A DNA stretch of 52,406 bases from Macrostomum lignano (Eukaryota): the NCBI GenBank assembly GCA_002269645.1, contig NIVC01000698.1:144694-197099 (forward strand). Direction: 5' to 3'. Under the pieces are notes generated by a model that saw nothing but the letters and a program-made list of their open reading frames with translations, was not told where the DNA came from and did not search any database. The position numbers and the translations under genes were made by a program. Positions 1 to 28,844 of this stretch are shown piece after piece (position 1 is the first letter of the stretch; every line of letters starts with the position of its first letter).

Positions 1-1350
1 AATTTAAATGCTGCAATAGAAAATAAACTGTTAGGCGTTAGTTTGATTTATTTTAGGAATCACATTATAATACATATGCAGTATAATTGGAATCATTAGA
101 AGATATGAAAGAAATTTTAAAATAAAATATTCTAATTAAAGCGACATGAGCATGAGGATGAGAACGTGGACACGACACCATTAATATAATTGTAAAATAC
201 ACAATTATGAATTATCAAGTAAACAGTTCAGTAAGAGGAGTTCCCATTTATAGATTTTTTAACTTTCGGCTTTCAAAAATAATAATTAGAATACAATAAA
301 CTAGAAATTTATAACGTGGACAACCGAGTTGGCAAGTTCCAAAACTTAAAATTTTCTGCGAAGTCTGCGATTACTACAAAATTTAGAGCAAATGGCTAGA
401 TTTAAATGTTATTAATAAATAATCTAAAAAAGCTTTCAAAATACAATCAAGAGCTTATAGATGGCAGCACTGTGGTATTAATAGGTCAAAATCATTGCAG
501 GCAGTAGATTGTAGTTCTACTTCTCAGGGCGAATGTTAAATGACAATCGGTCAGTAGTAAAAACAAAATCAGGAATAGGCTATTCTCAGATCTAGCCAGT
601 CAAGCTTAGAGTTAAAATCTGCGTTAAATTGTAGGGCAAAATAGGACAAAATTGATTTGAGCGCATAGAATAGAAGCAAAGTATTGGATTACAAAATTGA
701 ATTACGATCGTATATTGTAAAAAGTATACAAATGTTACACTTAAACTCCTACTTATTTACCTTATCAAAACATAAAAGCAAAAACTCAGTTTTTAGAGAA
801 GTTTTAATCATTATATTTTTCTATTAAAACTAAAATGATAACTTATTGTCTACAAAGTGTTGTTTTTATCAATAGTTATGTAACTGTATTTGTTTTAAAT
901 TACTAAAAGTGTAAATGAAAGCCGCGGTAAAAAAATTATTTCTGCTTTTTCGTCGACAATATAAGAACTTAATTTGACTTTCAGCACTAAGAAACACGTT
1001 ACTTTAACAACAATGTTTTTTTGCGGATTAAAGTTTGTAGATGGGTCCGATGCATGGTTTCTGTTATGAAAGGATGTACGTACAAATGTAAGAGACGATC
1101 TACATCATTGCCATGGCTGTGTTTGTGTAGCTTAAATAAAAAGTATGAACATTGCATGTAAACAATGTTTTATATAATTATTTATAGGCGGCTAGAGATT
1201 AAAAAAAACAAGAAAATAAGTAAATTTTCCCAAACATATAATCTCAGTTGTATACTTTTCTATTCATGCACGGCTGCTATTTTCCCCAACCAGATCCGAT
1301 GGACTGCAATGATAGGTACTAGCTAGCTAGTTAGCCGCAGGACTTATGCA

Positions 1351-1548
1351 ATGGGTATCCTGGCCGCAGCTCTGCTGGTCCTTGGCGGCCCAGTTCGGTG
1401 TCATGCCAGCCGACCCAACACCGGTGTCTCCAACGCCAGAGCTAATGAGCCGAGCAATTGGCAATTATATACATGTACGTTTCATCAAGTCGACTCAATG
1501 TTTTGCATGTATGAATTCGATCGAGGATCTGAAAACGGAGTGTTGTGA
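1351..1548 (+). CDS. Possible small secreted peptide or orphan exon (65 aa)
   Basis: GC-rich island in AT-rich DNA. ATG at 1351 follows an acceptor-like CCGCAG (ends 1340). Hydrophobic N-terminus MGILAAALLVLGG resembles a signal peptide. Possible donor GTACGT near 1475. No family recognised. Confidence 0.25.
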   Translation: MGILAAALLVLGGPVRCHASRPNTGVSNARANEPSNWQLYTCTFHQVDSMFCMYEFDRGSENGVL

Positions 1549-2981
1549 TCAGCGATGCGCGATGCTCCAAAGTCCAAATTATTCAATACATGTAGCGCTT
1601 CATTGCATTCCTGTTGTTTGTTCAAGCGTATTTTAGGGTTTTGCTGAAGCAATCGGCCGGCGTTAAATGTTTAAACTCACTTTTTTGTTTAAACTGATCA
1701 AGAAGGAAACTGTAATTTGATTCAAACAATTGGGAACGTAAAAGCTTTTTTTAAATAAATCGCAAAGCACTGTGACGAGGTGAACAGTAGTGATAATTTA
1801 TTGTTTATCAATTGACAGCCTTTTTACAATCTAAAGGGGCAGTATAGTTCTGTAGTAGTCAACCGCAATATATAATGAAGGGCCTTCAGTCTAGCATGTA
1901 ATAGACTGAGTTTGATTGGTCACAAGACCATGCTAGAGCCCGCGCAGGAAGATGCGGCCAAAAGACACAATTAATATAATACGCTTCAAAATAATTCATT
2001 TTGAGATACAATTAAAACAAACTTAAGTATTGATTACATTAGATATGAATATATCAGGTTAATCAATATTACATTAAAAAATCACAAATATTATGCTCAA
2101 ATAATCCATAAAGTATTTGAACGAATTTGACACCGTCACATCACTATTAGTAATTAACAGGATGATTTTAAATATTTGCACGTTCCCTACTAGAAGCTGC
2201 GTGGTTACAAAACGTACGTCACACTTAAAACAGTCCAATTGACTCTATATCTGTAACAAGGGTATGAAGCGCAAAAAGTTCCATATTCCAAGCAATGCAT
2301 ACGTATACGGCCATAAATTCTTCCTAGAGAGCTGCGCGCCTCGATTTCCGCATTTCAAGTGCAGAAGCGGTGCAGATTCCAGCAGCATCTGCACGCCATT
2401 CCATTCCACCTCGGACCTCCTTGGTTCCGAAAACATGACGCGACCCGCGGGCGACTAAAATAGCGACAGCCCCCCCCCCAGTAGTTGCGCGAACCTCGGC
2501 AGATATAAATTCCTTGCTAAACGCGCAGACACGTGATAAAAGCACCCAGCTGCCGCATGATGCCGGAATTCGGACCCCCTTCGTGCAGCTGCCTCGGGAA
2601 CGTCGATCCCCGCAAGTGGATTGGCCGATAAGGCAGTCACGGGACTGCGATCGGCTCTAGAAAGCAAATAAGTCTTCTAAAAGAGCAATGGGTACTATAC
2701 AGTGTAATACAAGCGAGTAAAGGGTGACAGAAGAAGCTATTGCACTACAATTTGCACTGTACTGGCTGTGGAGTTGTACATCCCACACGCCCTTCCAATA
2801 TCTATATATATATGTAATAGCTTACGTATATTCGACCTATTTTTATACCTATTCTTGCTTACAGAACCGACCCTGCAGATCAGCTGATTCTCGCGGCTCC
2901 CAACCTCACCAGCCAGCCCTATATATCTGCATGCTCTTAGCCAGCAAATAGGGGAGTTCATAGAGCGAACCCATCGTAACC

Positions 2982-5900
2982 ATGGCGCCAGTTCTTAACG
3001 CCCTGCTGCTGCTCCTCACTGGTGTCTCCGCCACCTTGGCCGCTGAACAATTCGTTGAAGCCGGCGACAGCGGCAACTGTACTAGGCCGAGCCCGGCCTG
3101 CTGCGCCACTGGACCACCCTGGAACTCGCCGGGGTGCCCGTGTTTGTGCACCAGCGCCTGGACCGGCGCGGCCACTTCCTGCTGGAGCCGCTGCTGTCCC
3201 TGCCAACCACCGAGCCCGTCGAGGCCATCATCAACGCCTCGTGCGTCCGGTTCGACCGGCTGACCGGAGTTCACTACCTGAGCTTTCCCGTGGCTCTGCG
3301 AGATGACGAGCTGCTGCACCAGGCCAGGGAGAGGCTGCGGCATGCCGCGCCTCGGTCTGTGGCCTTCCTGCGGCCGGCCGGGCCAGCCTGCCGCCTGCGG
3401 AGGCCGAGGGACGCCTGCCTGGCGGCTGGAAGATGGAGAGCCTCCGGCTCAGCTCGGAGGGCCAGCTGGGCTACCTGCGAATCAACTGCCCGCACCAGCG
3501 GGCCTGCGTGGAACTCAGGCATGTCCGCGATTATGAACTGCATCCCAATGCCTCATCATGAGGGATCTCGGATCGCAATCTCAAAAAATCTCTCAGATCT
3601 CCCCTTATTCCAACACGGATCCCATCGCAAGAAATCCCAGATACCAACTTAGAAACTCCTATCTCAGGAAATTTCGGACCCCATCTCAAGAAAATCCATC
3701 ACGAGTAATCATGGATCATCTAGGATCATCTCAGGAAATCCCAGATCCCATTATGAGATGTCCAAGATCCCATTATGGGATATCCAAGATCCCATTATGG
3801 GATATCCAAGATCCCATTATGGGATATCCAAGGTCCCAATATGAAATATCCAAGATCCCAATATGGGATATCCAAGATCCCATTTTAGAATATCCAAGAT
3901 CCCATTATGGGATATCCAAGATCTCATGATGGGATATCCAAGGTCCCAATATGAAATATCCAAGATCCCAATATGGGATATCCAAGATCCCATTTTAGAA
4001 AATCCAAGATCCCATTATGAGAAATTCAAGATCCCAGTATGGGATGTCTAAAATCCCATTATGGGACAACTCAACTCCCATAAAAATCGATGCTGAAAAA
4101 TTTTTCAGATCCCAGCTGTTGAGTGGCAGCGTTGGGATCTTTGAGCGCTTCCTGCTCCGCCTGGACTCCGCCGTGTCGCCCGACGGCTGCGCCTCCGTTG
4201 CAAACCTGACCAAGCCGGTGGTGGTGCCCGCCGCCTCGCAGATCGACGTCGCGCACTTCGCCCGCCGGAGCGTCGGCGACGCGTCCGGCCCGCCCGATGT
4301 CGACGACAGCCGTAACTTGACGGCCTGCTCCAAGCCGGCGCCCCAGCTGGTGCTGTACCGGGATTTCTACATCAAAGGCAGGCCGGTGTTTGTGCTGACG
4401 AGGCGCGAGTCCGTGGCGGCCAGGGCGCCGAGCGAGTTCTGGCTGGAGCCGCTGCTCAGCCTGCAGACCGGGGAGGCGGTCACCGCCCGAGGGTTTCGGA
4501 ACGCCAGCGGCTGGTGAGACTTAACTGCTGCATTCGAGATCCCAAATCCCAGATTGACAATTCAGATCATCAATCCTACGTTCTTATCGTAGAATTTTAG
4601 TACCCAAAATCCTAGTTCCCAAATCCCAGTTCCCAAATCCCAGTTCCCAAATCCCAGTTCCAAAGTCTCAGTCCCCAAATCCCAGTTCCCAAATCCCAGT
4701 TCCCAAATCCCAGTTCCAAAGTCTCAGTCCCCAAATCCCAGTTCCCAAATCCCAGATCCCAAATCCCAGATCCCAAATCCCAGATCCCAAATCCCAGATC
4801 CCAAATCCCAGTTCCCAAATCCTAGTTCCCAAATCCCAGATCCCAAACCCCAGTTCCCAAATCTCAGTCCCCAAATCCCAGTTCTCAAATTCCAGATCCC
4901 AAATCCCAGTCATAAAACGCTAAATCAATGCTCTGATTTAATTAAAAATCCCAGATCCTAGCTGTAATACCAGATCCTACAGTTTCAAGATCTCTGATCC
5001 CTTCAGCTCCTGAGTTGAAAAATTTGCATAGATCCCCAGATTACTCAATGTGCTGGTAACAATGACATTAGAAAAGGTCTCCCCAAAGTTTACCTGACCC
5101 AGTGCACCGCTCCGCAGGCCCTACGTGCCCCTCCGCCTGAGCCTCCGCCAGTCGGACATCAGAAGCGCCGCAGTGAAGCGGCTGCGACAGCCCAACAGGC
5201 CAGTTCCCAGTCTGCGCTACCTGCACCTCGTCGACTGGCGTCTGGAAGGCCGCAAGCGCCTGCCCGGCTTTAAAGTGGACCGACTACGGCTGTCCACCAA
5301 CCGGGAGGTCGCCCATATCCGGTTGATGGCGCCGAACGACACAGCAGCGGGTGCCAAGGCTGCTGAAGTGCTGAGGTGAGCATTCTCGCGCTTCCTACGA
5401 GTACTCAGGGGTCCAGCTGGATCGCTAACCCTACCCTAACTCTAACCCTACCCTAACCTAAACCCTAACCCTAACCCCAACTCCTGCCTCGATAGTGTAT
5501 TTTCCCGAAAAGCCTACACCTTTGAAGTGTTTTCTAAGAAACGAAATTTAAACCGTTCCACTTGATTTGATGTTGCAAAGCATTTGAAATATTTCAGCCT
5601 GCTTGATACTAACAGTAGAGTATTAGGGTTTTGACTCGAAATTCGTATGTTAAAATAAAAAAAAGTTTTGATTTGAACATTAAGAGGCCAATACACACTC
5701 CTTGTACTTTAGATTTTCGATCATCTCACTCCACACATGTATCTCTGATCTGATTGGATACGCATCAAAGTCAAAGGACACCCACCTCACGCGTCCTGAA
5801 ATCATCTCTAATCTGATTGGATAAGCGCCAAAGTCAAAGGACACCCACCTCACGCGTTCTGAAATCATCTCTAATCTGATTGGATAAGCGCCAAAGTCAA

Positions 5901-8900
5901 AGGACACCCACCTCACGCGTCCTGAAATCATCTCTAATCTGATTGGCCGAGAGCGAACACAGACTAGATTGATCACAGAAACCCCTCCCGAACATCCCAG
6001 GCAGCAGATCGCCGCCAATCCAACTCTGCTATTCGACGCGCTGCAGTTCAGCTTTGCCTTCTCGCCGGACGAGGCGCCTGCCTCCTCTGCGGCGTCCTCA
6101 TCGTGCGAGGAGTCGCCAGTCTACTGGGTGCAGCGCAGGCCCATTGTACCGCACCTGTCCCAGTTCCCAGTGTCCGAGCTGCAGCGCCACTGGCAGGCAG
6201 ATCGGCCTGGCAATGAGTCCCGCTGTCGCCTGTCGATGCAGCCGCAGGTGGCGAAGGTGGTGAGCTACCGGGGCCAGCCGCTGGTGCTGTGGAAACGGCA
6301 GGACCATCCAGGCAGTCATTCATCTCAGCTGGATGACTTCCTAATCGAGCCAATCTTCCTGCTGCGCAACGACGGTCTTGAGGCGGCGTTCAGCGTCGGA
6401 TTCGACTACGCCAGATCGGCGCATTTCGTCAGCTGCCGGGTCGACCTGCAGAGCGACGACGCGTTGGCGTTAATTAGGCGGAATTTGACCCACTTGGACA
6501 GGTTCCGCTCGGTTGCGTTCGCCATGATTGGCAATCTCAGCATCTGGCCGACTGCCAACATCAGCGGCGTGACGGCCGTGGAATTCTACGCCTCCTACAA
6601 CCAGCGGGACGGCTTTCTGCGGCTCTACTGCGACCGGCTGGCCGCCTGCGCCGGGCTTAGGTCGGTTTTAAACTGGCTTCCATAGTTACTGGCTCCGATT
6701 ACATTGCCTAGCAACCTGGTATCCTAGCAACCTGGTATCCTAGCAACCTGGTATCCTAGCAACCTGGTATCCTAGCAACCTGGTATCCTAGCAACCTGGT
6801 ATCCTAGCAACCTGGTATCCTAGCAACCTGGTATCCTAGCAACCTGGTATCCTAGCAACCTGGTATCCTAGCAACCTGGTATCCTAGCAACCTGGTATCC
6901 TAGCAACCTGGTATCCTAGCAACCTGGTATCCTAGCAACCTGGTATCCTAGCAACCTGGTATCCTAGCAACCTGGTATCCTAGCAACCTGGTATCCTAGC
7001 AACCTGGTATCCTAGCAACCTGGTATCCTAGCAACCTGGTATCCTAGCAACCTGGTATCCTAGCAACCTGGTATCCTAGCAACCTGGTATCCTAGCAACC
7101 TGGTATCCTAGCAACCTGGTATCCTAGCAACCTGGTATCCTAGCAACCTGGTATCCTAGCAACCTGGTATCCTAGCAACCTGGTATCCTAGCAACCTGGT
7201 ATCCTAGCAACCTGGTATCCTAGCAACCTGGTATCCTAGCAACCAAGCAATCTAGCTCAGAGATTGGATATAACTGCTGTCAGTGTCTGAAAAGTTAAGC
7301 AAAATTCGCTGCGGTTAGTGCAGGCTGCTTTTTTTAACCTGACTTTCTCAACTCTCGACTTGCTTAACTAATCTCCAGGAACTACCTGTCAAAGTCCAGC
7401 GAACTTCTGCTCGAGCGCTTGCAAATCAACATCACCATGGCAACGCCTGACGACGGCTGCCTAGCACCGGAGCCCATTGGCAAGCTGATCCTGGCCAGGC
7501 GACATCTCGTAGACCTGGCCTACCTCAGGGAGAAGTCGCCGCCGCGGCTGGTGTGCGCCGAGGCCGCCTATCCCCGGGTGCAGGCACCGGTGCAGCCGAC
7601 CGGCTCCTGCCAGCTGGTGCTGCACCGGTCCCGCAACCTCCTGGGCGGCCAGAGCCTCTTTGTCGAACCGGCCTTCTGCCTGGACCGGCAGCCGCCCACT
7701 CTGCACTTTGACTACGTGCGCAACCTGCCCTACCTGAGTCTGCGAATGGCGCTGGCGAACGATTCCCTGCTTGGCGAAGTTCGCCGAGGCCTCGCGGACT
7801 CCGGCGGGACCAGCGACACCGCCGACATCCCGGCGGAGGACACCATCGACTTCATGGAGCTGTGGAACCTCCGGCTGAGACCGAGGACCCGGCTGCCGGG
7901 ACTCGAGGCCGGCGATTTCAAAGTGGCCTTCGATAGGAGCGAAGCCGAACTGCGGATTCACTGCCTGAGCGGCAGAGTGTGCAGGACTCTGCAGTGAGCC
8001 GGCGCTACCCACTAAATTGTCCTCAATCCAGACCGCTGCGTCTCGAACGCCTGGGATGCGGATTCTCGATCCATGGTCCATCGATTATTTTCCTGATCCC
8101 TGATCCTTAATTCCTGATCTCTGATCCCTGATCTCTGATCCCTGATCTCTGATCCTTGATCCCTGATCCCTGATCCCTGATCCCTGATCCCTGATCCTTT
8201 ATCTTTGATCCCCGATTCGTGATCCCTAATCCCTGATAACCCGATCCTTGATCTTGATACCGATCCTCTTTCCTGATTTAGATCATCCCGATTCTCCTGA
8301 TCCCCAATCTGATCCTTGATCTCTATTCCTTGATCCCAATCCTTTATTCTTCTCAATCAGTCACCATTGGCCCCTGCTCCGCAGCTCGAACATGCTGCAG
8401 AACAGCACCCTGCTGCTGGAGAACTTCAACCTCGAGATCACGGCAAATCTGCCCAGCTACGATTGCTGGATGCCGCAGCTGTTGCGCAAGCAAATTTTGA
8501 GTCGCAGCGCCTCCTACTTCGATTTGAGCTACCTGAACGGCAAAACCCGCCGCCTCCCCGGCTGCCCTCGGCCCCTGCCGATGCGCCTGTTCAGCGTCAA
8601 GTCGGTGGACGGTTGCACCGCCGTGGTGCACAAGCGCGAGGACACCAAGGCGGAGTTCTACATCGAGCCGCTGTTTTGCTTCAACGGCAGGGTTGAGCTG
8701 GGCTTCAACTACCTCACGGGCAGCCCCTACGCCAGCCTGGGCGTCGACCTCAGCCGCCAGTCCGTGCTGGACACCGTGACCGCCCAGCTCGCCAATCTAG
8801 CGCCCAAGCGGGTGTCATTTCTCCAGGTGCGCAAGGTGAACCTGACTCGGAGGGACTTGGGCAGCGAGGCCTACCAGCTGGACAGCTTCTCCGCCAGCGT

Positions 8901-11900
8901 GGACAGGAGCCGGGGCCAGTTCCGGGTGCTCTGCCAGACCTGGGCTGCCTGCAGGGACCTCAGGTAAGCTGGTGTGGTCTCGGATTGGGATCTCGGATTG
9001 GGATCTCGGATTGGGATCTCGGATTGGGATCTCGGATTGGATCTCGGATTGGGATCTCGGATTGGGATCTCGGATTGGGATCTCGGATTGGGATCTCGGA
9101 TTGGGATCTCGGATTGGGATCTCGGATTGGGATCTCGGATTGGGATCTCGGATTGGGATCTCGGATTGGGATCTCGGATTGGGATCTCGGATTGGGATCT
9201 CGGATTGGGATCTCGGATTGGGATCTCGGATTGGGATCTCGGATTGGGATCTCGGATTGGGATCTCGGATTGGGATCTCGGATTGGGATCTCGGATTGGG
9301 ATCTCGGATTGGGATCTCGGATTGGGATCTCGGATTGGGATCTCGGATTGGGATCTCGGATTGGGATCTCGGATTGGGATCTCGGATTGGGATCTCGGAT
9401 TGGGATCTCGGATTGGGATCTCGGATTGGGATCTCGGATTGGGATCTCGGATTGGGATCTCGGATTGGGATCTCGGATTGGGATCTCGGATTGGGATCTC
9501 GGATTGGGATCTCGGATTGGGATCTCGGATTGGGATCTCGGATTGGGATCTCGGATTGGGATCTCGGATTGGGATCTCGGATTGGGATCTCGGATTGGGA
9601 TCTCGGATTGGGATCTCGGATTGGGATCTCGGATTGGGATCTCGGATTGGGATCTCGGATTGGGATCTCGGATTGGGATCTCGGATTGGGATCTCGGATT
9701 GGGATCTCGGATTGGGATCTCGGATTGGGATCTCGGATTGGGATCTCGGATTGGGATCTCGGATTGGGATCTCGGATTGGGATCTCGGATTGGGATCTCG
9801 GATTGGGATCTCGGATTGGGATCTCGGATTGGGATCTCGGATTGGGATCTCGGATTGGGATCTCGGATTGGGATCTCGGATTGGGATCTCGGATTGGGAT
9901 CTCGGATTGGGATCTCGGATTGGGATCTCGGATTGGGATCTCGGATTGGGATCTCGGATTGGGATCTCGGATTGGGATCTCGGATTGGGATCTCGGATTG
10001 GGATCTCGGATTGGGATCTCGGATTGGGATCTCGGATTGGGATCTCGGATTGGGATCTCGGATTGGGATCTCGGATTGGGATCTCGGATTGGGATCTCGG
10101 ATTGGGATCTCGGATTGGGATCTCGGATTGGGATCTCGGGACCTGATCACGATCGGAGTACAGGTGACAGGCTCTCCATCATCCCGCAGCTCCAATCTCT
10201 CCGCGCAGCCCTGGCTGCTGTTCGAGCGAATCCAGCTGACAACCTTCATGGCTAACGTCGCCGACTGCGAGCTGTCGACCGCCATTTACCAGCAGCCGAC
10301 CTCTGCAGCCAGTGACTTCCGCCTGCCGCTCAAGGCCCTCCGGTTGAAGCTGCCAGCGGTGGGCGAGTGCCCCGCCGACGAGGCGCCGCGCCTGCTGCGC
10401 ATCCTGAGCATCGACGGGTGCCCGGTGGCGGTCTACCAGCAGCCCGGCGAGCTGCCACATCAGCGCCGCCTTCTGATCGAACCGCTGCTCTGTTTCCATG
10501 GCAACAATGCCAGTTCGAGTCTGAGCCGGGGCCGCGACTTTCTCAGCAGCGAGGAGTTCGTCAGCGTCCGGCTGATGCTGCGAAGCCACGGCGTGCTGGC
10601 CGCGGTGCAGGAGCAGCTGTCGCTGTCCACCTTGGAGGCCGGCTCCCTGCTGCGCTTCGCCGAACTCTGGGACGTCGGCGTGGCCGAGGAGAGCACTGCG
10701 GCGGGATTGCGGGTGGCTCGGCTCGGCGTTGCCGCCGACGGCGAGACAGCGGAGCTGCGAGTAGCCTGCAGCAGCCGGGCGGCCTGCGAGGCGCTGGTGT
10801 GAGATGCGCCGGGTGGGAGCTTGGCTTGATATGGGGGATGATGAAGCTCAGCATCTGTGTAGTGGGATGCGGAATCTGAGCACATAATGTGAGGTTCGAA
10901 TTGTGGGATGTGGGGTCTGAGCATAGGATGTGGGGTCTGAGTACAGGATGTGGGATATGAGCACAGGATGTGGCCCGATCTGAGCATAGGATGTGGGGTC
11001 TGAGTACAGGATGTCGGATCTGAGCATTGGATGTGGGGTCTGAGTACAGGATGTCGGATCTGAGCATTGGATGTGGGGTCTGAGTACAGGATGTCGGATC
11101 TGAGCATAGGATGTGGGGTCTGAGTACAGGATGTCGGATCTGAGCATAGGATGTGGGATTTGAACACAGGATGTGGGATCTGAGCACGGATGTGGGATAT
11201 GAGCACAGGATGTGGGATCTGAGCATAGGATGTGGGATCTCATCGTAGAATGTGGGATCTGAGCACAGGATGTGGGATCTGAGCATAGTAAGTCGGATCT
11301 GAGCATAGGATGTGGGATCTGAGCATAGGATGTGGGATCTGAGCATAGGATGTGGGATCTGAGCATAGGATGTGGGATCTGAGCATAGTATGTCGAATCT
11401 GAGCATAGGATGTGGGATCTGAGCACAGGATGTGGGATTTGAGCACAGGATTTACTGTAGTATTATCCTGTAGTACTATATGTACGTTCGTAGGTTGTTG
11501 GATATTTTTCGAATAAAAAGAACTTTCCGGATGACACGAGAAAGATGAACGACTTCAAGGGATTATCATTAATCCCAGGGTTTGATCTTCGGTTCGGATT
11601 AAAAGGAACGGTGCATCACCCTAACGGATCGCGAACCCTTTACTCTTTAGGATTCTTTTCTTTGAAGCTTAGGCTTCAGACTTTTCAAGTTAATAATTAG
11701 ATTTCTTTTGCGAAAACAGCAATTCCGTTGACCGCGTAAAGGTTCTAAAGACCTAATGAACTATAAATATCTCTCGCCATTTCTCTCGCAGTCAAAGCCT
11801 CACGGAGGAGCCCACCGACTACCTTCGGTCGGTGCTGTTCTCGGTGTCCAGCCTCACGCCTTCGCGCAGCTGCTACTTCAAAGCGCCCGCCGCCAAACGG

Positions 11901-13582
11901 CCCCTCATCATCGGCTACAGCTGGGACCGGCGCTGCCGCTACGACAGCCTGGCTGAGTCCGGCGGGACCGCGAAGCGCAATGCCAGCCTCCAGTTGTGGA
12001 CTGGTGAGACCAACTTTGATCTACGAGGGCTGTCCCAAAAGTACCTGCCTGTCACCTGCCTGTCATCTGCCTGTCACCTGCCTGTCACCTGCCTGTCATC
12101 TGCCTGTCACCTGCCTGTCACCTGCCTGTCATCTGCCTCTCACCTGCCTGTCACCTGCCTGTCACCTGCCTGTCATCTGCCTGTCACCTGCCTGTCATCA
12201 TCTACTTGTCACCCATCTGAAATCTTGCTGTCATTCACCTGTAATCTAGCTGTCATCTATCTGTAGTCTAGCTGTCATCTATCTGTAGTCTAGATGTCAT
12301 CTATCTGTAGTCTAGCTGTTATCTATCTGTAGTCTAGCTGTCATCTATCTGTAGTCTAGCTGTCATCTATCTGTAGTCTAGCTGTTATCTATCTGTAGTC
12401 TAGCTGTCATCTATCTGTAGTCTAGCTGTCATCTATCTGTAGTCTAGCTGTCATCTATCTGTAGTCTAGCTGTCATCTATCTGTAGTCTAGCTGTCATCT
12501 ATCTGTAGTCTAGCTGTCATCTATCTGTAGTCTAGCTGTCATCTATCTGTAGTCTAGCTGTCATCTATCTGTAATCTAGCTGTCATCTATCTGTAGTCTA
12601 GCTGTCATCCTCCTGCATTTTAGCTGTCATCCTCCTTCATTTTAGCTGTCATCCTCCTGCATTTTAGCTGCCTTCTATCTGTAGTCTAGCTGTCATCTAT
12701 CTGTAATCTAGTTGTCATCCTCCTGTAATCTAGCTGTCATCCTGTAATCTAGCTGTCATCTATCTGTAATATAGCTGTCATCTATCTGTAATATAGCTGT
12801 CATCTATCTGTAATATAGCTGTCATCCTTCTGTAATCTAGCTGTCATCCTCCTCTAATCTAGCTTTCATCTATCTGTAATCTAGCTGTCATTCTCCTGTA
12901 ATCTAGCTGTCATCAACCTGTAATCTAGCTGTCATCTATCTGTCCTCTAGCTGTAATCTAGGTGTCATCCTCCTGTTAATCTAGCTGTCATCTATCTGTC
13001 CTCTAGCTGTAATCTAGCTGTCATCAACCTGTAATCTAGCTGTCATCTATCTGTCCTCTAGCTGTAATCTACCTGTTATCTACATGTTACCTGTAATCTA
13101 GCTATCATTCATTTGTCGCATACCCGTCATCCACCCGACGTCCCACAGTGCATCGCTGCCACCCGGACGAGTGGACGGCCTGTGAGGTGTCCCGCTCCGG
13201 CCGGTCCGCCTATTTCTTCAGCCGAGGCCTCTCTGACTGGGCCGACGCCCGGCGAACCTGCCGATCAATGGGCGCCGACCTGGCCGTGATTGACAGCCCG
13301 GAGGAGAACGCGGAGGTGTTCGCGCACCTGGTCGGCGCCAGCTGGATCGGCATGTACAGATCCGGCGGCCGGTTCGTCTGGGTGGGCGGGCCGGTCGCTC
13401 GCAGCGAAGGCTACCGGAACTTCGCGGCGGGGACCGAGCAGGCGGAGCTGGACTGGCAGTTCAACTGCGTGGCCATGAGCGGCGTCTCCAGCCTGAGCGG
13501 CGCTGGCGGCGGCGGCAGCGGCGGCTGGCTACCGGCGGCCTGTCACCGACACCTCCGCTTCGTGTGCCAGTATTCCGCCTGA
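2982..13582 (+). CDS. Secreted multi-repeat protein (~1436 aa): signal peptide, 6 copies of an unrecognised ~200-aa domain, linker, C-type lectin domain
   Basis: Exons 2982-3518, 4109-4513, 5118-5375, 6001-6660, 7379-7993, 8385-8963, 10190-10798, 11792-12003, 13149-13582. All acceptors end in CAG. Donors are GT except GC at 3519. Introns 1-7 are phase 2 and intron 8 is phase 1, and all join in frame. Exon 1 needs +2 nt (two 1-nt frameshifts), giving 4311 nt = 1437 codons. Signal peptide [20 protein letters not shown]. Many N-x-S/T sequons. Confidence 0.8.
3740..4067 (+). repeat. 22-bp minisatellite ATCCAAGATCCCATTATGGGAT (intron 1)
   Basis: Direct reading. The unit contains the palindrome ATCCCAT-T-ATGGGAT. 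Confidence 0.9.
4603..4912 (+). repeat. 14-bp minisatellite CCCAAATCCCAGTT/GAT
   Basis: Direct reading, intron 2. Confidence 0.9.
5425..5479 (+). repeat. Short degenerate telomere-like (CCCTAA)n tract
   Basis: CTAACCCTACCCTAACTCTAACCCTACCCTAACCTAAACCCTAACCCTAACCCC. Confidence 0.7.
5742..5946 (+). repeat. 63-bp tandem repeat, ~3 copies
   Basis: TCAAAGGACACCCACC recurs at 5771, 5834 and 5897. Confidence 0.9.
6707..7243 (+). repeat. Perfect 16-bp minisatellite CCTAGCAACCTGGTAT, ~33 copies
   Basis: Direct reading, intron 4. Confidence 0.97.
8086..8340 (+). repeat. Degenerate 7-bp repeat TGATCCC/T
   Basis: Direct reading, intron 5. Confidence 0.85.
8977..10138 (+). repeat. 13-bp minisatellite GGATTGGGATCTC, ~89 copies
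   Basis: Near-perfect array with one 12-bp variant near 9040. Explains the spurious long ORFs at 8960-10285. Confidence 0.98.
10852..11450 (+). repeat. 20-bp minisatellite GATGTGGGATCTGAGCATAG
   Basis: Direct reading, intron 7. Confidence 0.93.
12045..13105 (+). repeat. Compound array: 11-bp CCTGTCA(T/C)CTG grading into 22-bp TAGCTGTCATCTATCTGTAGTC
   Basis: Direct reading, intron 8. The two units share the core CTGTCATCT. Confidence 0.92.
13149..13582 (+). CDS. Terminal exon encoding a C-type lectin-like domain
   Basis: Motifs YFF...W.DARRTC...[13 protein letters not shown]...WIG, then CV...W...C...FVC match the established CTLD signature. Acceptor CACAG ends at 13148 and the stop is 13580-13582. 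Confidence 0.92.
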
Positions 13583-13774: not shown

Positions 13775-14310
13775 CGAAACCTTGATTCACTGATTCTTGG
13801 GGATTCACACATTCTTGGAGCATTCACTGATTCTTAGGGATTCATTGATTGTTGGGGATTCACTGATTCTTGGATATTCACTGATTCTTTGGGGATTCAC
13901 TGATTCTTGGGGGATTCACTGATTGTTGAGGATTCACTGATTCTTGGGGGATTCACTGATTGTTGAGGATTCACTAATTATTGGGGATTCACTGATTTTT
14001 GGGGATTCACTGACTCTTGGATATTCACTGATTCTTGGGGGATTCACTGATTGTTGAGGATTCACTGATTGTTGGGGATTCACTGATTATTGGGGATTCA
14101 CTGATTGTTGGGGATTGTTGGATATTCACTGATTGTTGGGGATTCACTGATTGTTGGGGATTCACTGATTGTTGGGGATTGTTGGATATTCACTGATTGT
14201 TGGGGATTCACTGATTGTTGAGGATTCAGTGACTGTTGGGGATTCACTGATTGTTGGAGATTCAGTGATTGTGGTATTCACTGATTTCTGGATTCAGTGA
14301 TTGTTGGATT
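13775..14310 (+). repeat. 19-20-bp minisatellite GGGATTCACTGATT(C/G)TTG
   Basis: Direct reading. Confidence 0.9.
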
Positions 14311-15988: not shown

Positions 15989-16459
15989 TTACACCTGATG
16001 CGATGAGTAGCTCGGGCGGCCATACGGCATGCTGGCATAAGCTGTGTTGTCCGCCTGCCTCATGGACGGCGGCTGCTGCTGGAAGGTGCCCTGCGGCACC
16101 GCCGAAGCGTACGTGGGATTCAAGTTTGATTGCACCTGCGGATGCTGCGGTGGCGGCGGCCCGCCAGCCAGGTTAATTCCCCTGGCCGGGTCCAGGTAAA
16201 CCGGGTCCATGTTTACGTTGGTCTGATGACCGGTTGGCAGGTAGGCCTGCTGCATCCCCGGCTGCCTCTGGAACATCAGCTGCCTCTGCTGCTGCACCGC
16301 CCACATCCGGTTCTTGCCGGCCCCGCCGCCTCCGCCGCTTCTGTCTAGGCGATATTTGCGGCAGCAGATGATGCCCAGGGCGATGGCGAAGATCAGGGCG
16401 ACTCCGCCGCCAAGCATCGCTATGAGCAGGCGCTCCTCGTACGGGTCAAGGCCGACCAT
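15989..16459 (-). CDS. Single-pass membrane protein (156 aa) with Gln/Pro-rich cytoplasmic tail
   Basis: ATG at 16459, 7 nt after acceptor TTTCAG. TM segment LLIAMLGGGVALIFAIALGII is followed by CCRKYR. Tail contains NPTY. An upstream exon 17273-17110 (TTTGCAG ... GTAAGT) has an in-frame stop and no ATG, so it reads as 5'UTR. Confidence 0.8.
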   Translation of the reverse strand: MVGLDPYEERLLIAMLGGGVALIFAIALGIICCRKYRLDRSGGGGGAGKNRMWAVQQQRQLMFQRQPGMQQAYLPTGHQTNVNMDPVYLDPARGINLAGGPPPPQHPQVQSNLNPTYASAVPQGTFQQQPPSMRQADNTAYASMPYGRPSYSSHQV

Positions 16460-19465: not shown

Positions 19466-19911
19466 TAGAAAATGTTAAGGAAGGCTGGTTTTCGCCGAAA
19501 AATACACTACGAAGATAGGAACATTTCACTTTTTTCATATTAAAATATGTACACTTACTTAGTAGTTTAAAATTAGTAGTTTTGATATGTACAATTAAAC
19601 ATGTCTTGTGCCTAAAAACCATTAATTAAAATGGCACGGCTGGGTCCTTGATTTTATGAATCTATTTTGTCATTCTTAGCTGACTGTGTAACGATATGTG
19701 TAACAGAGATGATAAAATAGATTCATAAATTTTTAGGTACAGGAAATGTACGTAGAATAAAAATATGACATAGAATTCTAATTTTGTAAACGAAAAGCTC
19801 TATGAATATCGATAAAGCTAAAAGAAAGGCAGAACATATCAAGAAATAAACATTTTTCTATATAGGTTCTGCCTCCTTTCGAAAGCAATAACAATTTTAA
19901 TATGAAAAAAT
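19466..19911. mobile_element. Second, diverged copy of the same MITE family, right end replaced by a 9-bp array
   Basis: Shares the left TIR (GTTTTCGCCGAAAAATACACTACGAAGATAGGAA), the core (reverse complement of 27478-27535) and the right arm (CGAAAAGCTCTATGAATATC...TCTGCCTCCT) with 27269-27795. Confidence 0.75.
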
Positions 19912-20731
19912 CTGTCTATCCTGTCTATCCTGTCTATCCTGTCTATCCTGTCTATCCTGTTTATTCCTGTCTATCCTGTCTATCCTGTCTATCCTGTCTA
20001 TTCCTGTCTATCCTGTCTATCCTGTCTATCCTGTCTATTCCTGTCTATCCTGTCTATCCTATCTATCCTGTCTATCCTGTCTATTCCTGTCTATCCTGTC
20101 TATCCTGTCTATTCTGTCTATCCTGTTTATTCCTGTCTATCCTGTCTATCCTGTCTATCCTGTCTATCCTGTTTATTCCTGTCTATCCTGTCTATCCTGT
20201 CTATCCTGTCTATTCCTGTCTATTCCTGTCTATCCTGTCTATCCTGTCTATCCTGTCTATTCCTGTCTATCCTGTCTATCCTGTCTATCCTGTCTATCCT
20301 GTCTATCCTATCTATCCTGTCTATCCTGTCTATCCTGTCTATCCTGTCTATCCTGTCTATCCTGTCTATCCTGTCTATCCTATCTATCCTGTCTATCCTG
20401 TCTATCCTGTCTATCCTGTCTATCCTGTCTATCCTGTTTATTCCTGTCTATCCTGTCTATCCTGTCTATCCTGTCTATCCTGTCTATCCTGTCTATCCTG
20501 TCTATCCTGTTTATTCCTGTCTATCCTGTCTATCCTGTCTATCCTGTCTATCCTGTCTATTCCTGTCTATCCTGTCTATCCTATCTATCCTGTCTATCCT
20601 GTCTATCCTGTCTATCCTGTCTATCCTGTCTATCCTGTCTATCCTATCTATCCTGTCTATCCTATCTATCCTGTCTATCCTGTCTATCCTGTCTATCCTG
20701 TCTATCCTGTCTATTCCTGTCTATCCTGTCT
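19912..20731 (+). repeat. 9-bp minisatellite TATCCTGTC
   Basis: Direct reading. Confidence 0.96.
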
Positions 20732-21039
20732 GAATATAGATAGAGAGGAGAAAGGCAGACACAGGGGAGGCAGAGAAACGATAAAAAAACATCCCAGGAC
20801 GGAGATGCGAACGGTGAAACTATAGGCACCCGCCCGCATCGCAGGCCCTCCGACTCTCTCTCTCTCTAATCCTACATGCCCAGCCTTTGCTTATTGAATA
20901 ATTGAATAAAGGCGGCCCCCGAAAAGCCATTATTAAATCTCCATTCCCACCTCCGCTCAAGCGGACGGCCCCCTGCGCTTCAGTCTGTGGTTTTCTCCCC
21001 CCAATATTTTCTGTTCCCCCCAACGCGCCTTTCTACCAG

Positions 21040-24000
21040 ATCGCTGCGGCAAGCTGGCGGCCTCTGAGAGCCACGACGGAATCGGCAGTCAGCCGGCGGA
21101 GCTGACAGAAGACGATGCAGCGGCGTCAACTTCGGCTGAGGCGGCGGCGCCTGAAGAGACCGCCGACTCGGCTGGCAACAGCCGCGAGAAGGCCAGCATA
21201 TTTGTAGCGTACAGCCCGGAGGCTGGTTTCCTAGAGAAGCGCTTCATCGCCCGCCTGGTGAAGGAGCTCAAGGCCGTTGGCCTGGCTGACAGCGTCTGGT
21301 TCGACAAAGACGAAGGCCTCTTCGAGAGCAGCGCCTGGGTGGCCTGCAGCCTGGAGGCGGCCGAGAAGTGCTTCGCCGCTGTGCTGTTCCTGTCCGAGTC
21401 CTTCTTCTCCAGCCGGCTGGCGCTGCACACCATGCGCACCCTGGCGGAGCGGCTGCACGACAATCGTGCCTCGCTGCATCTGTTCGCCGTACTGCTCGAC
21501 GCCGAAGGTCAAAGCGGCCTCGAGCGCCAGTGTCCCCCAATCCTGGCCGAGGCGATACGGCGCGGCGACGGCGATGCGTCAGCGGCGTCGCTGGTCGACA
21601 TTGCCGAATCGCGTCGCCGCGGAGCGGCCGAGTCTGAGCTGATTGCCCAGTGCTCAGCCAGACTGGCGCCCCAGCTGGAGCGATTCGCCACCGACTTCCG
21701 GCCGCTGCTGCCGGAGCCGCTGCTGGCGCCGGGCTACACCGGAAAGTTCGCCAGCAAGCGCTTCCTGGCCTGGACTGTCAACGATCTGCAGGAGTGGCTG
21801 CACAGTCTGGACATTCGCGAGTTCTACAGGCAGCAGTTTGCCGAGCAGGGAGTGGACGGCTTCCTGGCCTACAGCCTGACGGACGCTGACCTGGCCGGCT
21901 CCCTTCGGGTGGACGTGCAGCTGTCTAGGAAGAAGCTGACGAGAGAGATTCTGAACCGCCTGCAGGCTGAGCAGCGTGACAGCTGGAGCGGCCGGTGCCG
22001 CCTGACGAAGCCGCGCCCCGGCTGCGTTTTTCTCGTCTGCGATCCGCGCCGGGACGCCAAAACTCGGGACGCGTTGAAACTCGCGCTAGAGCGTCGCCGA
22101 GTTCGCGTTAGCCACGTTGAAGAGCTCGGCGAGTCCAGGGACGACTTTCTGCGCAAGAACGGGCCCGCCATGGCCGCCTGCGGTCACGTGCTGGTGCTGC
22201 TCACCGAGCACAGCCCGAGATCGGCGGTGTTCTACCACTGCGTGATGTTCGCCGAATGGTTGGGCCGTCGGGTTATCGTGCTGTTCCTCACCAACTGCTG
22301 GTTTCAGCTGCGGCCGGCGTTGCGGGCTCTGCTGTGTGAGTTGCTTTGTTGCCTGTGAGTGGTGTGTCGGCCTGGCTGGGTCTTGATGTTGCCACGAAAT
22401 TGGCACAGCTCAGAAACCCCCCATCAGATTCTGTGAGTCAGTGGAGACGGCAGAGGAGCTCAATGGTAAACGCAACGCGACCCTGCCTGACGATTAGAAA
22501 GTCAAAGGGCCGTTTTACACCCTGTGTGAGCGTGTGTGTGCGTGCCCGCGTACAGTCGACGCAAGCAAACAATGTATTTGCGTACTAACCGTCTCCTGAT
22601 CTGCTTAACTTTACGATGGCAAGCATCTTTAAGGCATTAGAAGGCTGTTCGCATTTTATTCTCCCTGTAGTTATATAATCTGTAATCCTTGTCTCATCCC
22701 CTGCATTTGCCTTTGTCCGTTTTGATTTGTTTCGACTGAAATCAAAGTGTCAATGCCAATTGTATGTTGGCATGTCAACCATTTGCAGACGCTGCTTCAG
22801 CAAATACAAGAAATAGATACTGTGGAAAGGATTAATTGCGCGGCCCAAATTCTCAAGTTGCTTGCACCACTGACCCCCCCCTTTGGGCCATAGACAATGA
22901 AAAGCAATTCTTCAACAGCTCGATTCTTCCGCTAAGAATTTAGCTTGGGCCATAGACAATAAAAAGCAATTCTTCAACAGCTCGATTCTTCCGCTAAGAA
23001 TTTAGCTTGGGCCATAGACAATGAAAAGCAATTCTTCAACAGCTCGATTCTTCCGCTAAGAATTTAGCTTGGGCCATAGACAATGAAAAGCAATTCTTCA
23101 ACAGCTCGATTCTTCCGCTAAGAATTTAGCTTGGGCCATAGACAATGAAAAGCAATTCTTCAACAGCTCGATTCTTCCGCTAAGGACGAAACCGTTCGCT
23201 CCTGGGCTCAAATTTGCTGGGAAAATGCAATATAGTCTGTGGTAACCCCCCCCCCCGATGTCAGGCGGGTAACTTGGCATATATGACAGGGGAACAAATT
23301 GCACTTCTTCCATATCAAGTTTTGTCTATGGCCAATCCCACTCCAAACCGCATTCCCACCCAGAAAGCTCACATCGAGGTTGAAAGTGATGCCTAAGTAC
23401 ACTTTTTACCTCCTATTTTGAACGTGAAACGTCTAGCTCCTGTCCTCAAGTAGGAGAGGGTTTTCCTTTCAAGTTAAATCGGTTAGCAACATGCAGGTTT
23501 GTCATGGGGATATGGTAGCAAAGTCTACGAGCATGTTGCATATTGCTTGCAGAAAGTCGATCAAGACAAACACTCCTACGGGTGCATCTTAACGTCATTC
23601 AGATGATGTTCCTTTGCCTCATTCTCTTCTTTCAGACGATGCCCAAGGCTTGGATTTCAGCGGCCAGCCGGTGGCGGACAGCTTGGACGAGCTCGGCTCG
23701 GCCATAGTGGCGCCCGAGCGGACTCACCCAGCCGTGGTACTTGAGCAGAGCTATGTGCGCAAGCTGGCCAGAAAGCTGCCACCTGCTGGCTACCTGGCGC
23801 ACACCTCCGGTGAGCCGATGTACTCTTGCTGGGTTGTGAGAGCTGGTAGAGAAAGAGATCGTATGTGCATCTCCATTGACATTCACTACAACTTTGAAGC
23901 GACATTGGCTTTGTTTATTAATTTCTTTGCAATTTTATTGGCTTGAAATCGCTTCTAGTTATTCTCTATAAAATTATACTTCTTTATACTTTTTGTAATA

Positions 24001-26695: not shown

Positions 26696-26757
26696 AGCCG
26701 TGTAACATTGAAAGATGTGATGTCATGGCCACAATGACATGCAGTTGTTTTGCCTAG

Positions 26758-28844
26758 ACTCTTACCAACCCGTTATGCAAGCTGGAACAACTCTGCAATC
26801 CAACATGGCAACGCTGCCGAACTTCTTCGCAGCCCCTGCGCGCAGTTTGGACTCTGCTGCATCATCCAGCCAGTCGCAGCAGCCTGACCCAGCCTCTCCT
26901 GGCTTCATCAGGACTCGAACCGGTACGCAGCTCAGCTTGGCACCATCAGTGCCCAGCCAGCAGCATCAGCAGCCCGCCGTGTTCATCTCCTATCACTGGG
27001 ACTCCACCGAGGCCGTGCTGGAGCTGAAGCGATTCCTGATTGCCCACGCAATCCGAGTGCAGCTGGACACCGACAAGAGTCCTGATGAGGGTAGCATGAA
27101 GGTAATTGGAGTGACTTGATAGCTCAGCTTTGCCAATAAATTGAATAGCACTTCACTGCATGCGACACTCTGCATGCTATCACTTTCTTTGTAAACCCCG
27201 TTGACCCTCTCGTCACGGCCATTCACGCCCATGAAGGCCAACCCCTAAGGCGCGACCCTCGCGTTTCGTGGAAAATGTTTTGAAGGCCACTTTTCGCCGA
27301 AAAAAACACTACAGAGATAGGAAGTTTTCGTTTTTCAGCACAAAAATTGTTCGTTAGGTTAGGTTCACAAAATTAGGATTCTATGTTAATTTTATATTCT
27401 ACGTACATTTTCTGCACCTAAATACTCGTATCATTAAAATGATATTCAGCACAACTCGACTCTTTGGTTTTATGAAGCTATTTTATCATATCTGTTACAC
27501 ATATTGCTACATAGCCAGCTAAGAATGACAAAATACTCGTAGAATCATAACGAGTTTTTAGGCACAGGACATGTGCAATTGTACGTAGAATAAGAATTGA
27601 ACATTGAATCCTAGTTTTCTGAACGAAAAGCTTTATGAATATCAATAGAGTTATAAGAAAGGCACAACATATCAAAAGAAGAACATTGGGTCTGCCTCCT
27701 ATCAAAGGAATAACAGTTTTAGTGCTGAAAATATGAGAACTTCCCATCTCCGTAGTGTATTTTTCGGTGAAAACTGGCCTTCAAAACATTCTCCATTGAT
27801 TTAGTGTTGCGTCTTACTTATTCAACAGCGCGCTTCTTTAGTGTTTTAGCCTACGTTTCTTGCCAATACAAAATCATTCACAAGGGTTTTACAGCCACTG
27901 CACAAAAAAACTAAAAAATAATTGGAAAGTTAGAGTCATTAAGTTAATGCCAGCAATTACAGTTAGTCAAATCAGAAGCTTTTGTTTATTCGCTTAGAAA
28001 TCAACTCCATCATAGCTGTCGTAAAAAATCACAGTTCAATGTTTTTTCACCTCGCTGCTTTCTGGCAAACTTTCGACTTTTTTATTTTGCAGATCATGAA
28101 AGGCGTTCGTGACGACGGCAGTCGAAAGGTTGGCAACCAAATTTGGTGTTTCTTTTAGAGCTGCACTTTATAATAAGCGCGTGCGGACTGCTGTGTAACT
28201 AATAATTAATTTGAGGGTAATCCTTCGGTTAGAGTACATCAGATAAAATATTAACTGAGTGTGCTAAGCCGAGTGCCAGATGAGTGTGCTAAACTGAGTG
28301 CCAGATGAGTGTGCTAAGCTGAGTGCCAGATGAGAGTGAAAAAAACTGAGTGCCAGATGAGTGTGCCAAACTGAGTGCCAGATGAGTGTGCCAAACTGAG
28401 TGCCAGATGAGTGTGCCAAACCGAGTGCCAGATGAGGGTGCCAACAAAGGTTCTGCATGTAAATGAACTAAAACCCTTGCTTGCTAAATGCTTTGCCTCC
28501 CTATTACTAGATATCCCTCAATTTCCCATCCATTGAAAAACATTCCACAGGTGTTCATTGAAAAAGCTATGCGCGACTGTCACTGCGTTCTGCTGGCCGT
28601 CACGCCAAAATATCTGCGCAGCGAGAACTGCCAGTCGGATATTGAAGCCGCCTACAGGCAGCGCAGGCCGCTGCTGCCGGTGCTGCTGACCTTCTGCGCC
28701 TGGCCGCCCGACTCCAGCTGCGCCGCCGGCCTGCGCAAACGGCTGGCCGCGATTCCGGCCATAGACATCGGGAGCGAGCGGCTGGCCAAGAAGAATCTGG
28801 CTCGGCTGGTGCAGCGGGTGCAGCAGATCTCCGGGCCGCCTTGA
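26758..28844 (+). CDS. TIR domain exons: stand-alone TIR protein (ATG 26775 or 26805) or alternative 3' end of the upstream TIR-SAM-TIR gene
   Basis: Exons 26758/26805-27101 (donor AAG|GTAATT, phase 0) and 28551-28844 (acceptor CACAG). Motifs AVFISYHW...VQLD...AMRDCHCVLLAVTPKYLRSENCQSDIEAAY...LLPVLL are typical TIR (TIR_2-like). Confidence 0.88.
27269..27795. mobile_element. Non-autonomous foldback/MITE-like DNA element, full copy
   Basis: Imperfect TIRs of about 75 bp: left TGGAAAATGTTTTGAAGGCCACTTTTCGCCGAAAAAAACACTAC, right reverse complement TGGAGAATGTTTTGAAGGCCAGTTTTCACCGAAAAATACACTAC. Internal inverted pair TATTCTACGTACA/TGTACGTAGAATA. No TSD identified. Confidence 0.8.
28256..28442 (+). 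repeat. ~25-bp repeat CTGAGTGCCAGATGAGTGTGCCAAA
   Basis: Direct reading, ~7 copies. Confidence 0.88.

Follow-up and report, generated by a model that had tools for sequence, protein, structure and literature searches.

Introduction

Soluble recognition proteins in which one type of N-terminal stalk serves a C-terminal lectin-type head are represented by the vertebrate collectins and ficolins, whose collagen stalk carries a C-type lectin or a fibrinogen-type head, and by FREP, CREP and GREP of the snail Biomphalaria, in which one or two modules of the immunoglobulin superfamily precede a fibrinogen or C-type lectin head. To our knowledge, the innate recognition molecules of platyhelminths are poorly known. 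The flatworm Macrostomum lignano is genetically tractable, being amenable to transgenesis and RNA interference. Among its large secreted repetitive proteins, the adhesive protein Mlig-ap1 includes a C-type lectin domain and has KR-rich regions that alone exceed 3,600 aa, the domains of Mlig-ap1 and Mlig-ap2 being KR-rich regions, vWD, TIL, EGF, TSP-1 and LDL-receptor-like ones (PMC6410801). We here analysed a stretch of 52,406 nucleotides of the M. lignano genome (assembly GCA_002269645.1, contig NIVC01000698.1, positions 144,694 to 197,099 of the forward strand), referred to as the window, and describe a gene on its plus strand at 2982-13582 that encodes six tandem modules of an orphan domain family, predicted to be secreted, and a C-terminal C-type lectin-like domain (CTLD). 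The analysis followed up an original prediction, made from the sequence without database searches, that 2982-10798 encodes six tandem copies of an unrecognised extracellular domain of about 200 aa in a secreted lectin-tipped protein.

Results

Six tandem modules of one kind

The six segments were found to align pairwise by BLASTP, with E values of 2e-14 to 4e-2 in a six-sequence database and typically 23-31% identity over 130-220 aa, and also as one block in which an E-P dipeptide is invariant. For an independent assessment, a hidden Markov model (HMM) was built only from the modules of fibrinogen-type paralogues, with this gene and its orthologue excluded, and was searched against all 825 six-frame open reading frames (ORFs) of the window. 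This HMM detected modules 1-6 on the plus strand (Table 1) and nothing else among the 825 ORFs. The six tandem copies that had been proposed were thus recovered by both approaches.

The core of the module comprises about 135 aa, conforms to the pattern G-[C]-x-V-x-V-H...F-x-[IL]-E-P-L-x-C...F-D-Y...L-R-x-x-C-x5-C-x-x-L and leads into a helix-strand-Cys extension. The N-terminal, central and C-terminal motifs quoted in the original prediction were all present in plus-strand frames at their places, and its remarks on individual features were borne out as well: the E-P dipeptide, called invariant, occurs in 25 of 25 module instances from eight proteins, module 1 is without the N-terminal part, and module 2 is without the C-x5-C pair in both species compared. 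In the 25-row alignment of these instances, the Cys of G-C and that of E-P-L-x-C are both present in 19 rows and both absent in the other 6, and the cysteines of C-x5-C are both present or both absent in every row except one. Because the cysteines of each pair come and go together, the modules are likely to be disulfide-stapled. A further staple, between the start of the core and the end of its extension, is tentatively suggested by a single case, the fibrinogen-type protein P0013, which is without the first core Cys of module 1 and also without the Cys of the following extension.

Gene structure and predicted product

The locus at 2982-13582 corresponds to the annotated M. lignano gene BOX15_Mlig001894g2, which has nine exons and is named in GenBank and UniRef only as "hypothetical" or "C-type lectin domain-containing protein". 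What had been taken for an undescribed system is, therefore, an undescribed domain at a locus already annotated as hypothetical. The concatenated repeat ORFs matched the GenBank product PAA78245.1 at 99% identity, and a splice-aware model of nine exons from 3433 reproduced this 1,285-aa protein exactly. The product of full length, about 1,436 aa, begins with a signal peptide, continues with six tandem modules, each of 160-220 aa, and a linker of 70 aa, and ends in the C-terminal CTLD. Both boundaries of the proposed repeat region were exact, 2982 being the ATG and 10798 the final base of the module 6 exon, and the lectin-tipped repeat architecture was right as to the six modules and the CTLD end, with the linker encoded by exon 8 having been overlooked.

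The introns are GT-AG except for intron 1, which has a GC donor (GCATGT, 3519-3524); this junction is the sole one that gives the annotated protein, and the sequence ...VELRSQL... of the orthologue agrees with it. The introns that bound the modules are all of phase 2 and lie directly after C-x5-C-x-x-L, and the module exons are all multiples of three in length (660, 615, 579 and 609 nt, and 405+258 nt for module 2, which is spread over two exons). Because these module exons are symmetric in phase 2, we conclude that the module copies arose via tandem exon duplication. The exons are GC-rich, with a GC content at third codon positions (GC3) of about 0.86, and the introns are AT-richer and packed with minisatellites. 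Since long regular minisatellites fill the introns and the intergenic DNA, the ORF track is fragmented and contains spurious repeat ORFs on both strands.

In the full-length protein, the signal-like N-terminal segment is the sole hydrophobic stretch, and there are 17 N-glycosylation sequons and 38 Cys. These features fit the proposal of a secreted protein, which would also be N-glycosylated. The UniRef names "SHR-BD domain-containing" and "CAP10 domain-containing" for P0006 and P0008 (A0A1I8HC86, A0A1I8HD81), which are fragmentary models of this gene, were judged to be spurious because Pfam detects no domain in these two.

Table 1. Positions in the window of the exons and modules of BOX15_Mlig001894g2, of the frame changes in its exon 1 and of minisatellite arrays
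Feature	Position	Strand	Basis or remark	Independent HMM E
Exon 1, signal peptide and module 1 (core only)	2982-3518	+	encoded in one frame by P0004 and P0005	8e-25; frame-shifted end 1e-3
Signal peptide in exon 1	about 2982-3041	+	cleavable-looking	
First apparent frameshift, C-run	3093-3095	+	CCC, CCCC in intact copy; blastn vs L002	
Second apparent frameshift, G-run	3381-3383	+	GGG, GGGG in intact copy; blastn vs L002	
Annotated first coding segment	3433-3518	+	GenBank model, start Met 3433	
Exon 2, module 2 first part (IFERFLL ... FWLEPLLSL)	4109-4513	+	splice model, HMM	3e-6 and 7e-3 (exons 2 and 3)
Exon 3, module 2 second part, without C-x5-C pair	5118-5375	+	splice model, HMM	see exon 2
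Exon 4, module 3, 220 codons, phase 2-2	6001-6660	+	splice model, HMM	3e-21
Exon 5, module 4, 205 codons, phase 2-2	7379-7993	+	splice model, HMM	2e-23
Exon 6, module 5, 193 codons, phase 2-2	8385-8963	+	target of both AlphaFold models	5e-35
Exon 7, module 6, 203 codons, phase 2-2	10190-10798	+	splice model, HMM	6e-30
Exon 8, 70-aa linker between module 6 and CTLD exon	11792-12003	+	splice model	
Exon 9, CTLD and stop codon	13149-13582	+	splice model, Pfam	
Intronic minisatellite array	3734-4066			
Intronic minisatellite array	4607-4910			
Intronic minisatellite array	5741-5946			
Intronic minisatellite array	6707-7244		16-nt unit, 33.6 copies, 100% identity	
Intronic minisatellite array	8092-8253			
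Intronic minisatellite array	8978-10139		13-nt unit, 89.5 copies, 99% identity	
Intronic minisatellite array	10906-11451			
Intronic minisatellite array	12043-12197			
Intronic minisatellite array	12200-13082			
Further regular minisatellite	13784-14307			
Further regular minisatellite	19902-20825			
Further regular minisatellite	32506-33496			
Further regular minisatellite	36537-37990			
Further regular minisatellite	42196-43312			
Further regular minisatellite	45207-46238			

The truncated N-terminus and the gene copies

Exon 1 is read in frame 0, then 2, then 1, and the GenBank model, with Met 3433 as its start, is without the signal peptide and the greater part of module 1. Three near-identical copies of the gene are present in the M. 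lignano assembly, the window copy included, and the other two, P0004 (BOX15_Mlig001890g2, 1,436 aa) and P0005 (BOX15_Mlig001546g1, 1,438 aa), have an intact N-terminus in one frame. A blastn comparison of window 2900-3600 with the P0005 locus (L002) revealed two 1-nt gaps in homopolymers and zero substitutions over 701 bp. The remaining protein is the same as P0005 apart from a 2-aa indel, the rest of the coding sequence (CDS) is without substitutions relative to P0005, and the two loci are 99.2-99.8% identical across exons and introns. The annotated CDS begins only at 3433 because the two 1-nt deletions break the frame. The assembly is long-read-based, such indels being its commonest error type, and the two deletions are probably homopolymer errors of long reads, derived from the assembly. 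Tiny introns were also considered as the origin of the frame changes and rejected, because there is no GT..AG pair that would fit and single bases in homopolymers are all that distinguishes the paralogue.

With regard to the copies themselves, the lengths of the minisatellite arrays vary between the window copy and the P0005 locus. Upstream of about 2223 (window 1-2223 compared with L002 1-2158), the identity between the copies falls to 86-90%, which points to the edge of a duplication or conversion immediately 5' of the promoter region.

A transcript-like orthologue contig and sequence constraint

Transcript-type evidence for the architecture was provided by the orthologue P0002 (1,462 aa), which derives from a 4,758-nt intronless Logan contig of run SRR30276812 with one uninterrupted ORF, as the orthologue mRNA from a related species would be expected to look. 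P0002 has all the parts, from the signal peptide through the six modules, encoded in a single frame, to the linker and the CTLD, and is 54% identical to the window protein over aligned codons (51% in BLASTP). As to the concern raised in the original prediction that the exons might belong to separate transcripts, all six modules and the CTLD thus lie in a single ORF, in this case from a related species and not from M. lignano RNA sequencing. The P0002 contig also contains, between the signal peptide and module 1 (L001 319-473), a coding 21-nt repeat that specifies 7.4 copies of the 7-aa unit D-V-P-S-A-T-T. This repeat looks mucin-like and is absent from all M. lignano copies, and the contig is otherwise without minisatellites.

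The ratio of nonsynonymous to synonymous substitution rates (dN/dS) between the window gene and P0002, determined by the Nei-Gojobori method, was about 0.38 for the whole protein (dN 0.395, dS 1.03; 54% aa identity), 0.26-0.40 for modules 4 and 5, the most conserved part (62-63% aa identity), and about 0.75 for the CTLD (42% aa identity), all of these being rough values because dS is about 1, near saturation, and codon bias is strong (GC3 about 0.85). They are indicative only, and they place the gene under constraint, with the head evolving faster than the stalk.

Distribution of the module and its fibrinogen-type relatives

An exhaustive HMMER search with a 12-repeat profile, covering 1.84 billion representative proteins, found the module in only 13 clusters, two of which are this gene and its orthologue. 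All the named clusters are from M. lignano, and those without a name consist of short fragments from Logan or IMG. The other named clusters are M. lignano "Fibrinogen C-terminal domain-containing" proteins, which fall into at least seven gene groups (BOX15_Mlig027058, 009643, 010465, 015530/003017, 024225 and 010354, and the UniRef-only cluster P0014, A0A1I8HWT0). In their complete models, a signal-like N-terminus precedes one or two modules, and a Fibrinogen_C domain (E 1e-13 to 4e-37) forms the C-terminus; the copy number of the module ranges from 1 to 6 among family members. In P0013, the first intron lies after C-x5-C-N-E-I-L in phase 2, at the same site as in the window gene, and this sharing of intron site and phase supports common descent of the module exon. 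The module is apparently, from this distribution, a Macrostomum-restricted building block upstream of two lectin-type heads. Because it is also fused to fibrinogen-related domains (FReDs), the mucus, adhesive or immune function suggested in the original prediction gains some weight. The fibrinogen-type relatives carry FSTxDxDND...GGWW, a sequence that, as a motif, resembles the canonical Ca2+ and ligand site of these domains.

Searches for a known family or fold

The original prediction could not assign the module to any family, and none of the searches for one returned a confident match. When Pfam-A was compared with single modules, whole proteins and the 25 instances, only the Lectin_C and Fibrinogen_C heads were matched; the best E for the 25 module instances was 0.035, and no family was matched by more than two members. 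A sequence-profile search of PDB gave a best E of 0.57 with the smaller module profile, and the larger profile retrieved no match up to E 10. AlphaFold2 modelled module 5 with a predicted local distance difference test score (pLDDT) of 75.8 and a predicted template modelling score (pTM) of 0.72 from a 12-row alignment, and a construct of the core of module 5 with both its flanking N-terminal parts (N5-core5-N6) with a pLDDT of 82 and a pTM of 0.74 from a 25-row alignment, core residues 60-195 being mostly above 90. Both models show one and the same order of elements, with eight beta-strands, a long helix that separates strand 5 from strand 6, and a further helix at the C-terminus.

Foldseek searches with the two models covered PDB and the viral model library BFVD. 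In PDB, the best E values were 0.16 and 0.015 with template modelling scores (TM) of at most 0.23, and the Fab chains among the PDB matches were at noise level, with a TM of at most 0.19. In BFVD, the model of exon 6 and the start of exon 7 had one match, A0A7S7YF07 of Medusavirus stheno T3 (E 1e-4, Foldseek probability 1.0, TM 0.37 for the query and 0.24 for the target, root-mean-square deviation 7.5 Å, identity 12%, 168 aligned columns). In PDB and BFVD together, no structural match other than this uncharacterised 417-aa protein, itself of predicted structure, fell below E 1e-3. The absence of a known fold accordingly refers to PDB as searched by Foldseek. In sum, the module matches no described family or solved structure; the domain family is an orphan, and the architecture that houses it is familiar.

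Register of the folding unit and the exon 8 linker

The first module of every family member starts at the core, with a Cys about 18 residues before G-C-P-V-F-V and without the LLFERxxL part, and the last module in every family member is then followed by an extra segment like the N-terminal part. In the model of N5-core5-N6, the pLDDT was 84-89 for the helix and strand behind C-x5-C, compared with 52-68 for the equivalent element ahead of the core and 77-81 for the second half of the leading N-terminal part (residues 41-60), the alignment depth of both flanks being similar. Judging from the model, the exon-defined repeat is probably offset by about 30-40 residues from the folding unit, the N-terminal motif belonging, as a C-terminal extension, to the core before it. 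The motif that had been read as the start of the repeat is therefore present, and its placement is better modelled as such an extension.

In position and pattern, the exon 8 linker is like the helix-strand-Cys element found behind each of the other module cores. The idea that it is a partial seventh repeat was statistically unsupported and was rejected, the resemblance of position and pattern alone being retained. An HMM of the N-terminal parts (modules 2-6 of both species) matched the tails of the fibrinogen-type proteins marginally (E 0.01 for P0018 and 0.09 for the N2 segment of P0010), and an HMM built from those tails found nothing significant in the window.

The CTLD head

The segment 13148-13582 scored 43.6 bits for Lectin_C (PF00059), above the cut-off of 22.6 (E 5e-11), and Lectin_C was also matched in P0004 and P0002. 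In PDB, the C-terminal 144 aa matched CD23 and the asialoglycoprotein receptor (E about 1e-9 to 1e-10), with a conserved framework of Cys and WIG. As for the Ca2+/sugar motifs, QPD of ASGPR1 (1dv8) is replaced by QAE and WND by WLP, the EPT position in the CD23 alignment is TEQ, and the CTLD of the orthologue P0002 is likewise without sugar motifs, with WVK at the WND position. In CTLDs without EPN/QPD and WND, canonical Ca2+-dependent sugar binding is not predicted. Because the canonical Ca2+/sugar triad is missing, the ligand is more likely to be a protein or a non-canonical glycan. Within the C-type lectin-like superfamily, the head has the profile match and the Cys/WIG framework and, unlike the sugar-binders, resembles non-sugar-binding CTLDs. 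The lectin tip of the original prediction is thus supported as to fold and not as to sugar ligands.

Neighbouring DNA

An interstitial telomere-like array of about 10 copies of CTAACC lies at 5425-5481 within intron 3. Downstream of the gene, a TIR-SAM-TIR-like neighbour was indicated by the ORFs 21258-22358 (+), with SAM_2 at E 2e-6 and a weak TIR_2, and 28488-28844 (+), with TIR_2 at E 6e-10, with which 26739-27119 (+) was grouped. That a gene of immune-signalling type adjoins the lectin gene may be a coincidence. The ORF at 15989-16459 (-) encodes 156 aa, including a single hydrophobic segment and a tail rich in P and Q, and has no Pfam match; it is probably a real gene, since a 156-aa gene is called at the equivalent site by the paralogous copy (L002 15726-16196). 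Furthermore, 47604-49922 (-) is a single-exon ORF of 772 aa with no Pfam match at E up to 1e-3 and represents an uncharacterised gene.

Discussion

The gene anatomy described above and its interpretation as that of a secreted stalk-and-head recognition protein form, as a whole, the explanation that we consider best, and we hold it to be somewhat more probable than its negation. The six modules would form an extended, disulfide-stabilised stalk or scaffold, which would hold the faster-evolving recognition head away from an N-terminal contact. The family could then be a lineage-specific counterpart of FREP/CREP or of collectins/ficolins, with one non-lectin stalk module and a fibrinogen-type or C-type lectin head, and its members would most plausibly be humoral recognition or agglutinating molecules. 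The original prediction had suggested, as an inference, a mucus, adhesive or immune function. Of these, immune recognition, when taken alone, is the reading that we prefer, with a confidence that stays short of even. It is more doubtful that the module represents a new fold or superfamily that arose or diverged in macrostomid flatworms as the common stalk of expanded, fast-evolving soluble receptors, in the manner of a non-immunoglobulin FREP/CREP counterpart.

As the main rival to the immune reading, the same anatomy could be that of a protein made by reproductive or secretory glands (seminal fluid, eggshell, cement, mucus or adhesive), in which the repeats would provide bulk, cross-linking or matrix. 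A C-type lectin domain is indeed also present in the adhesive protein Mlig-ap1 (PMC6410801). Lineage restriction and fast divergence, as seen in the 54% identity to the orthologue and the dN/dS of the CTLD, are typical also of reproductive proteins, N-glycosylation sequons and Cys are numerous, and the S/T/P-rich repeat at the N-terminus of the orthologue looks mucin-like. The M. lignano copies are, however, without this mucin-like stretch, the architecture is unlike that of Mlig-ap1 and Mlig-ap2 in having no KR-rich regions, vWD or EGF, and the sister architecture bears the FSTxDxDND...GGWW motif, which resembles the canonical ligand and Ca2+ site of recognition FReDs. We regard a gland product as rather unlikely. 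It is also conceivable, albeit unlikely in our judgement, that the module itself is the ligand-binding or oligomerising unit and that the CTLD or FReD is accessory. The E-P dipeptide is kept in all instances while even cysteines vary, modules 4 and 5 are better conserved than the CTLD (62-63% vs 42%), and the latter is without canonical sugar ligands; on the other hand, the invariant E-P, which lies at the end of strand 3 in the models, can equally be a structural turn, and a copy number of 1 to 6 is more typical of spacers.

Two further alternatives concern the module fold and the window copy. The module may be a highly divergent, unrecognised member of a described extracellular fold, such as a SEA-like or another alpha/beta sandwich. 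The search by structure covered PDB and the viral model library only, and the match to A0A7S7YF07 (E 1e-4, probability 1.0) indicates similar folds elsewhere. Against this stand two models with a confident core whose best values in PDB were an E of 0.015 and a TM of 0.23, Pfam, which includes SEA and other extracellular models and matched none of the 25 instances better than E 0.035, and the larger profile, which retrieved nothing from PDB at E up to 10; the balance makes a known fold in disguise a doubtful explanation. The window copy, in turn, would be a pseudogene if two true frameshifts in exon 1 removed the signal peptide and most of module 1. Both 1-nt deletions do stand in the deposited assembly, the annotation pipeline was forced to start the CDS at 3433, and at least two intact near-identical copies in the genome could make this copy redundant. 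Both lesions are nevertheless homopolymer runs shortened by one base, no other differences occur across the 701 bp, the remaining CDS has no substitutions relative to P0005, and homopolymer indels are the commonest error type of this long-read-based assembly, which renders a pseudogene improbable.

Several points weigh against the stalk-and-head recognition protein that we favour and should be considered together. The immune reading was reached by analogy, from proteins of other invertebrates that carry FReDs or CTLDs, and a stalk and a binding module would look alike in sequence. The alignments behind the AlphaFold models are shallow and consist mostly of paralogous repeats, the register argument draws on pLDDT and not on coordinates, and the HMM of the N-terminal parts did not detect the exon 8 linker of either species (E >10). 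The near-saturated dS makes the dN/dS values rough, and the A0A7S7YF07 match means that the module fold may not be unique. Were both exon-1 deletions real, the window copy would be without a signal peptide. Furthermore, the literature searched for the gene, its accessions, the family and Macrostomum C-type lectin or fibrinogen proteins contained no mention of the gene or the family.

These results provide a concrete gene family in which immune, reproductive or adhesive roles can be tested, and a confidently modelled domain of about 190 aa without a PDB neighbour, which is a candidate for a new fold and for a new Pfam family. The truncated GenBank model has also been corrected, 151 N-terminal residues including the signal peptide having been lost from it through two homopolymer indels, and the minisatellite-filled introns indicate that ORF maps of the M. 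lignano genome can be misleading.

With respect to known systems, Mlig-ap1 and Mlig-ap2 are similar in being large secreted repetitive proteins of the same species; they are far larger than the window protein and are set apart by their domain descriptions, since none of their vWD, TIL, EGF, TSP-1, LDL-receptor-like or KR-rich parts is found here. Mlig-ap1 and Mlig-tuf2, which combines IgV with CLECT, were considered as possible literature records of this gene and proved to be different proteins. A0A7S7YF07 is alike in fold by the Foldseek E value and unlike in its low TM and identity. Collectins and ficolins share the use of one stalk type for a C-type lectin or fibrinogen-type head at the C-terminus. 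Their stalk is collagen, whereas there is neither a Gly-X-Y run in P0004, P0005, P0002 and the fibrinogen-type members nor a Collagen match in Pfam here, and the stalk would consist of globular disulfide-containing modules, with no obvious coiled-coil neck in family members.

The likeness to FREP, CREP and GREP is one of sequence architecture and extends to the signal peptide, the N-terminal non-lectin modules, the short interceding region and the C-terminal fibrinogen or C-type lectin head, as well as to the combination of one N-terminal module type with different heads in a lineage-restricted multi-gene family. The N-terminal module differs in kind, being of the immunoglobulin superfamily in those proteins and here without an immunoglobulin match in Pfam, predicted as mixed alpha/beta with two helices, the long one in the core; it also differs in number, with up to six modules here, and the CTLD here is without sugar-binding motifs. 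As far as domain content tells, the module family does not belong to FREP/CREP, as it has no immunoglobulin domain, or to collectins/ficolins, as it has no collagen. If the interpretation that we favour is true, it would be another independent case of a stalk with an interchangeable lectin head, beside the vertebrate collectins and ficolins and the mollusc FREPs and CREPs.

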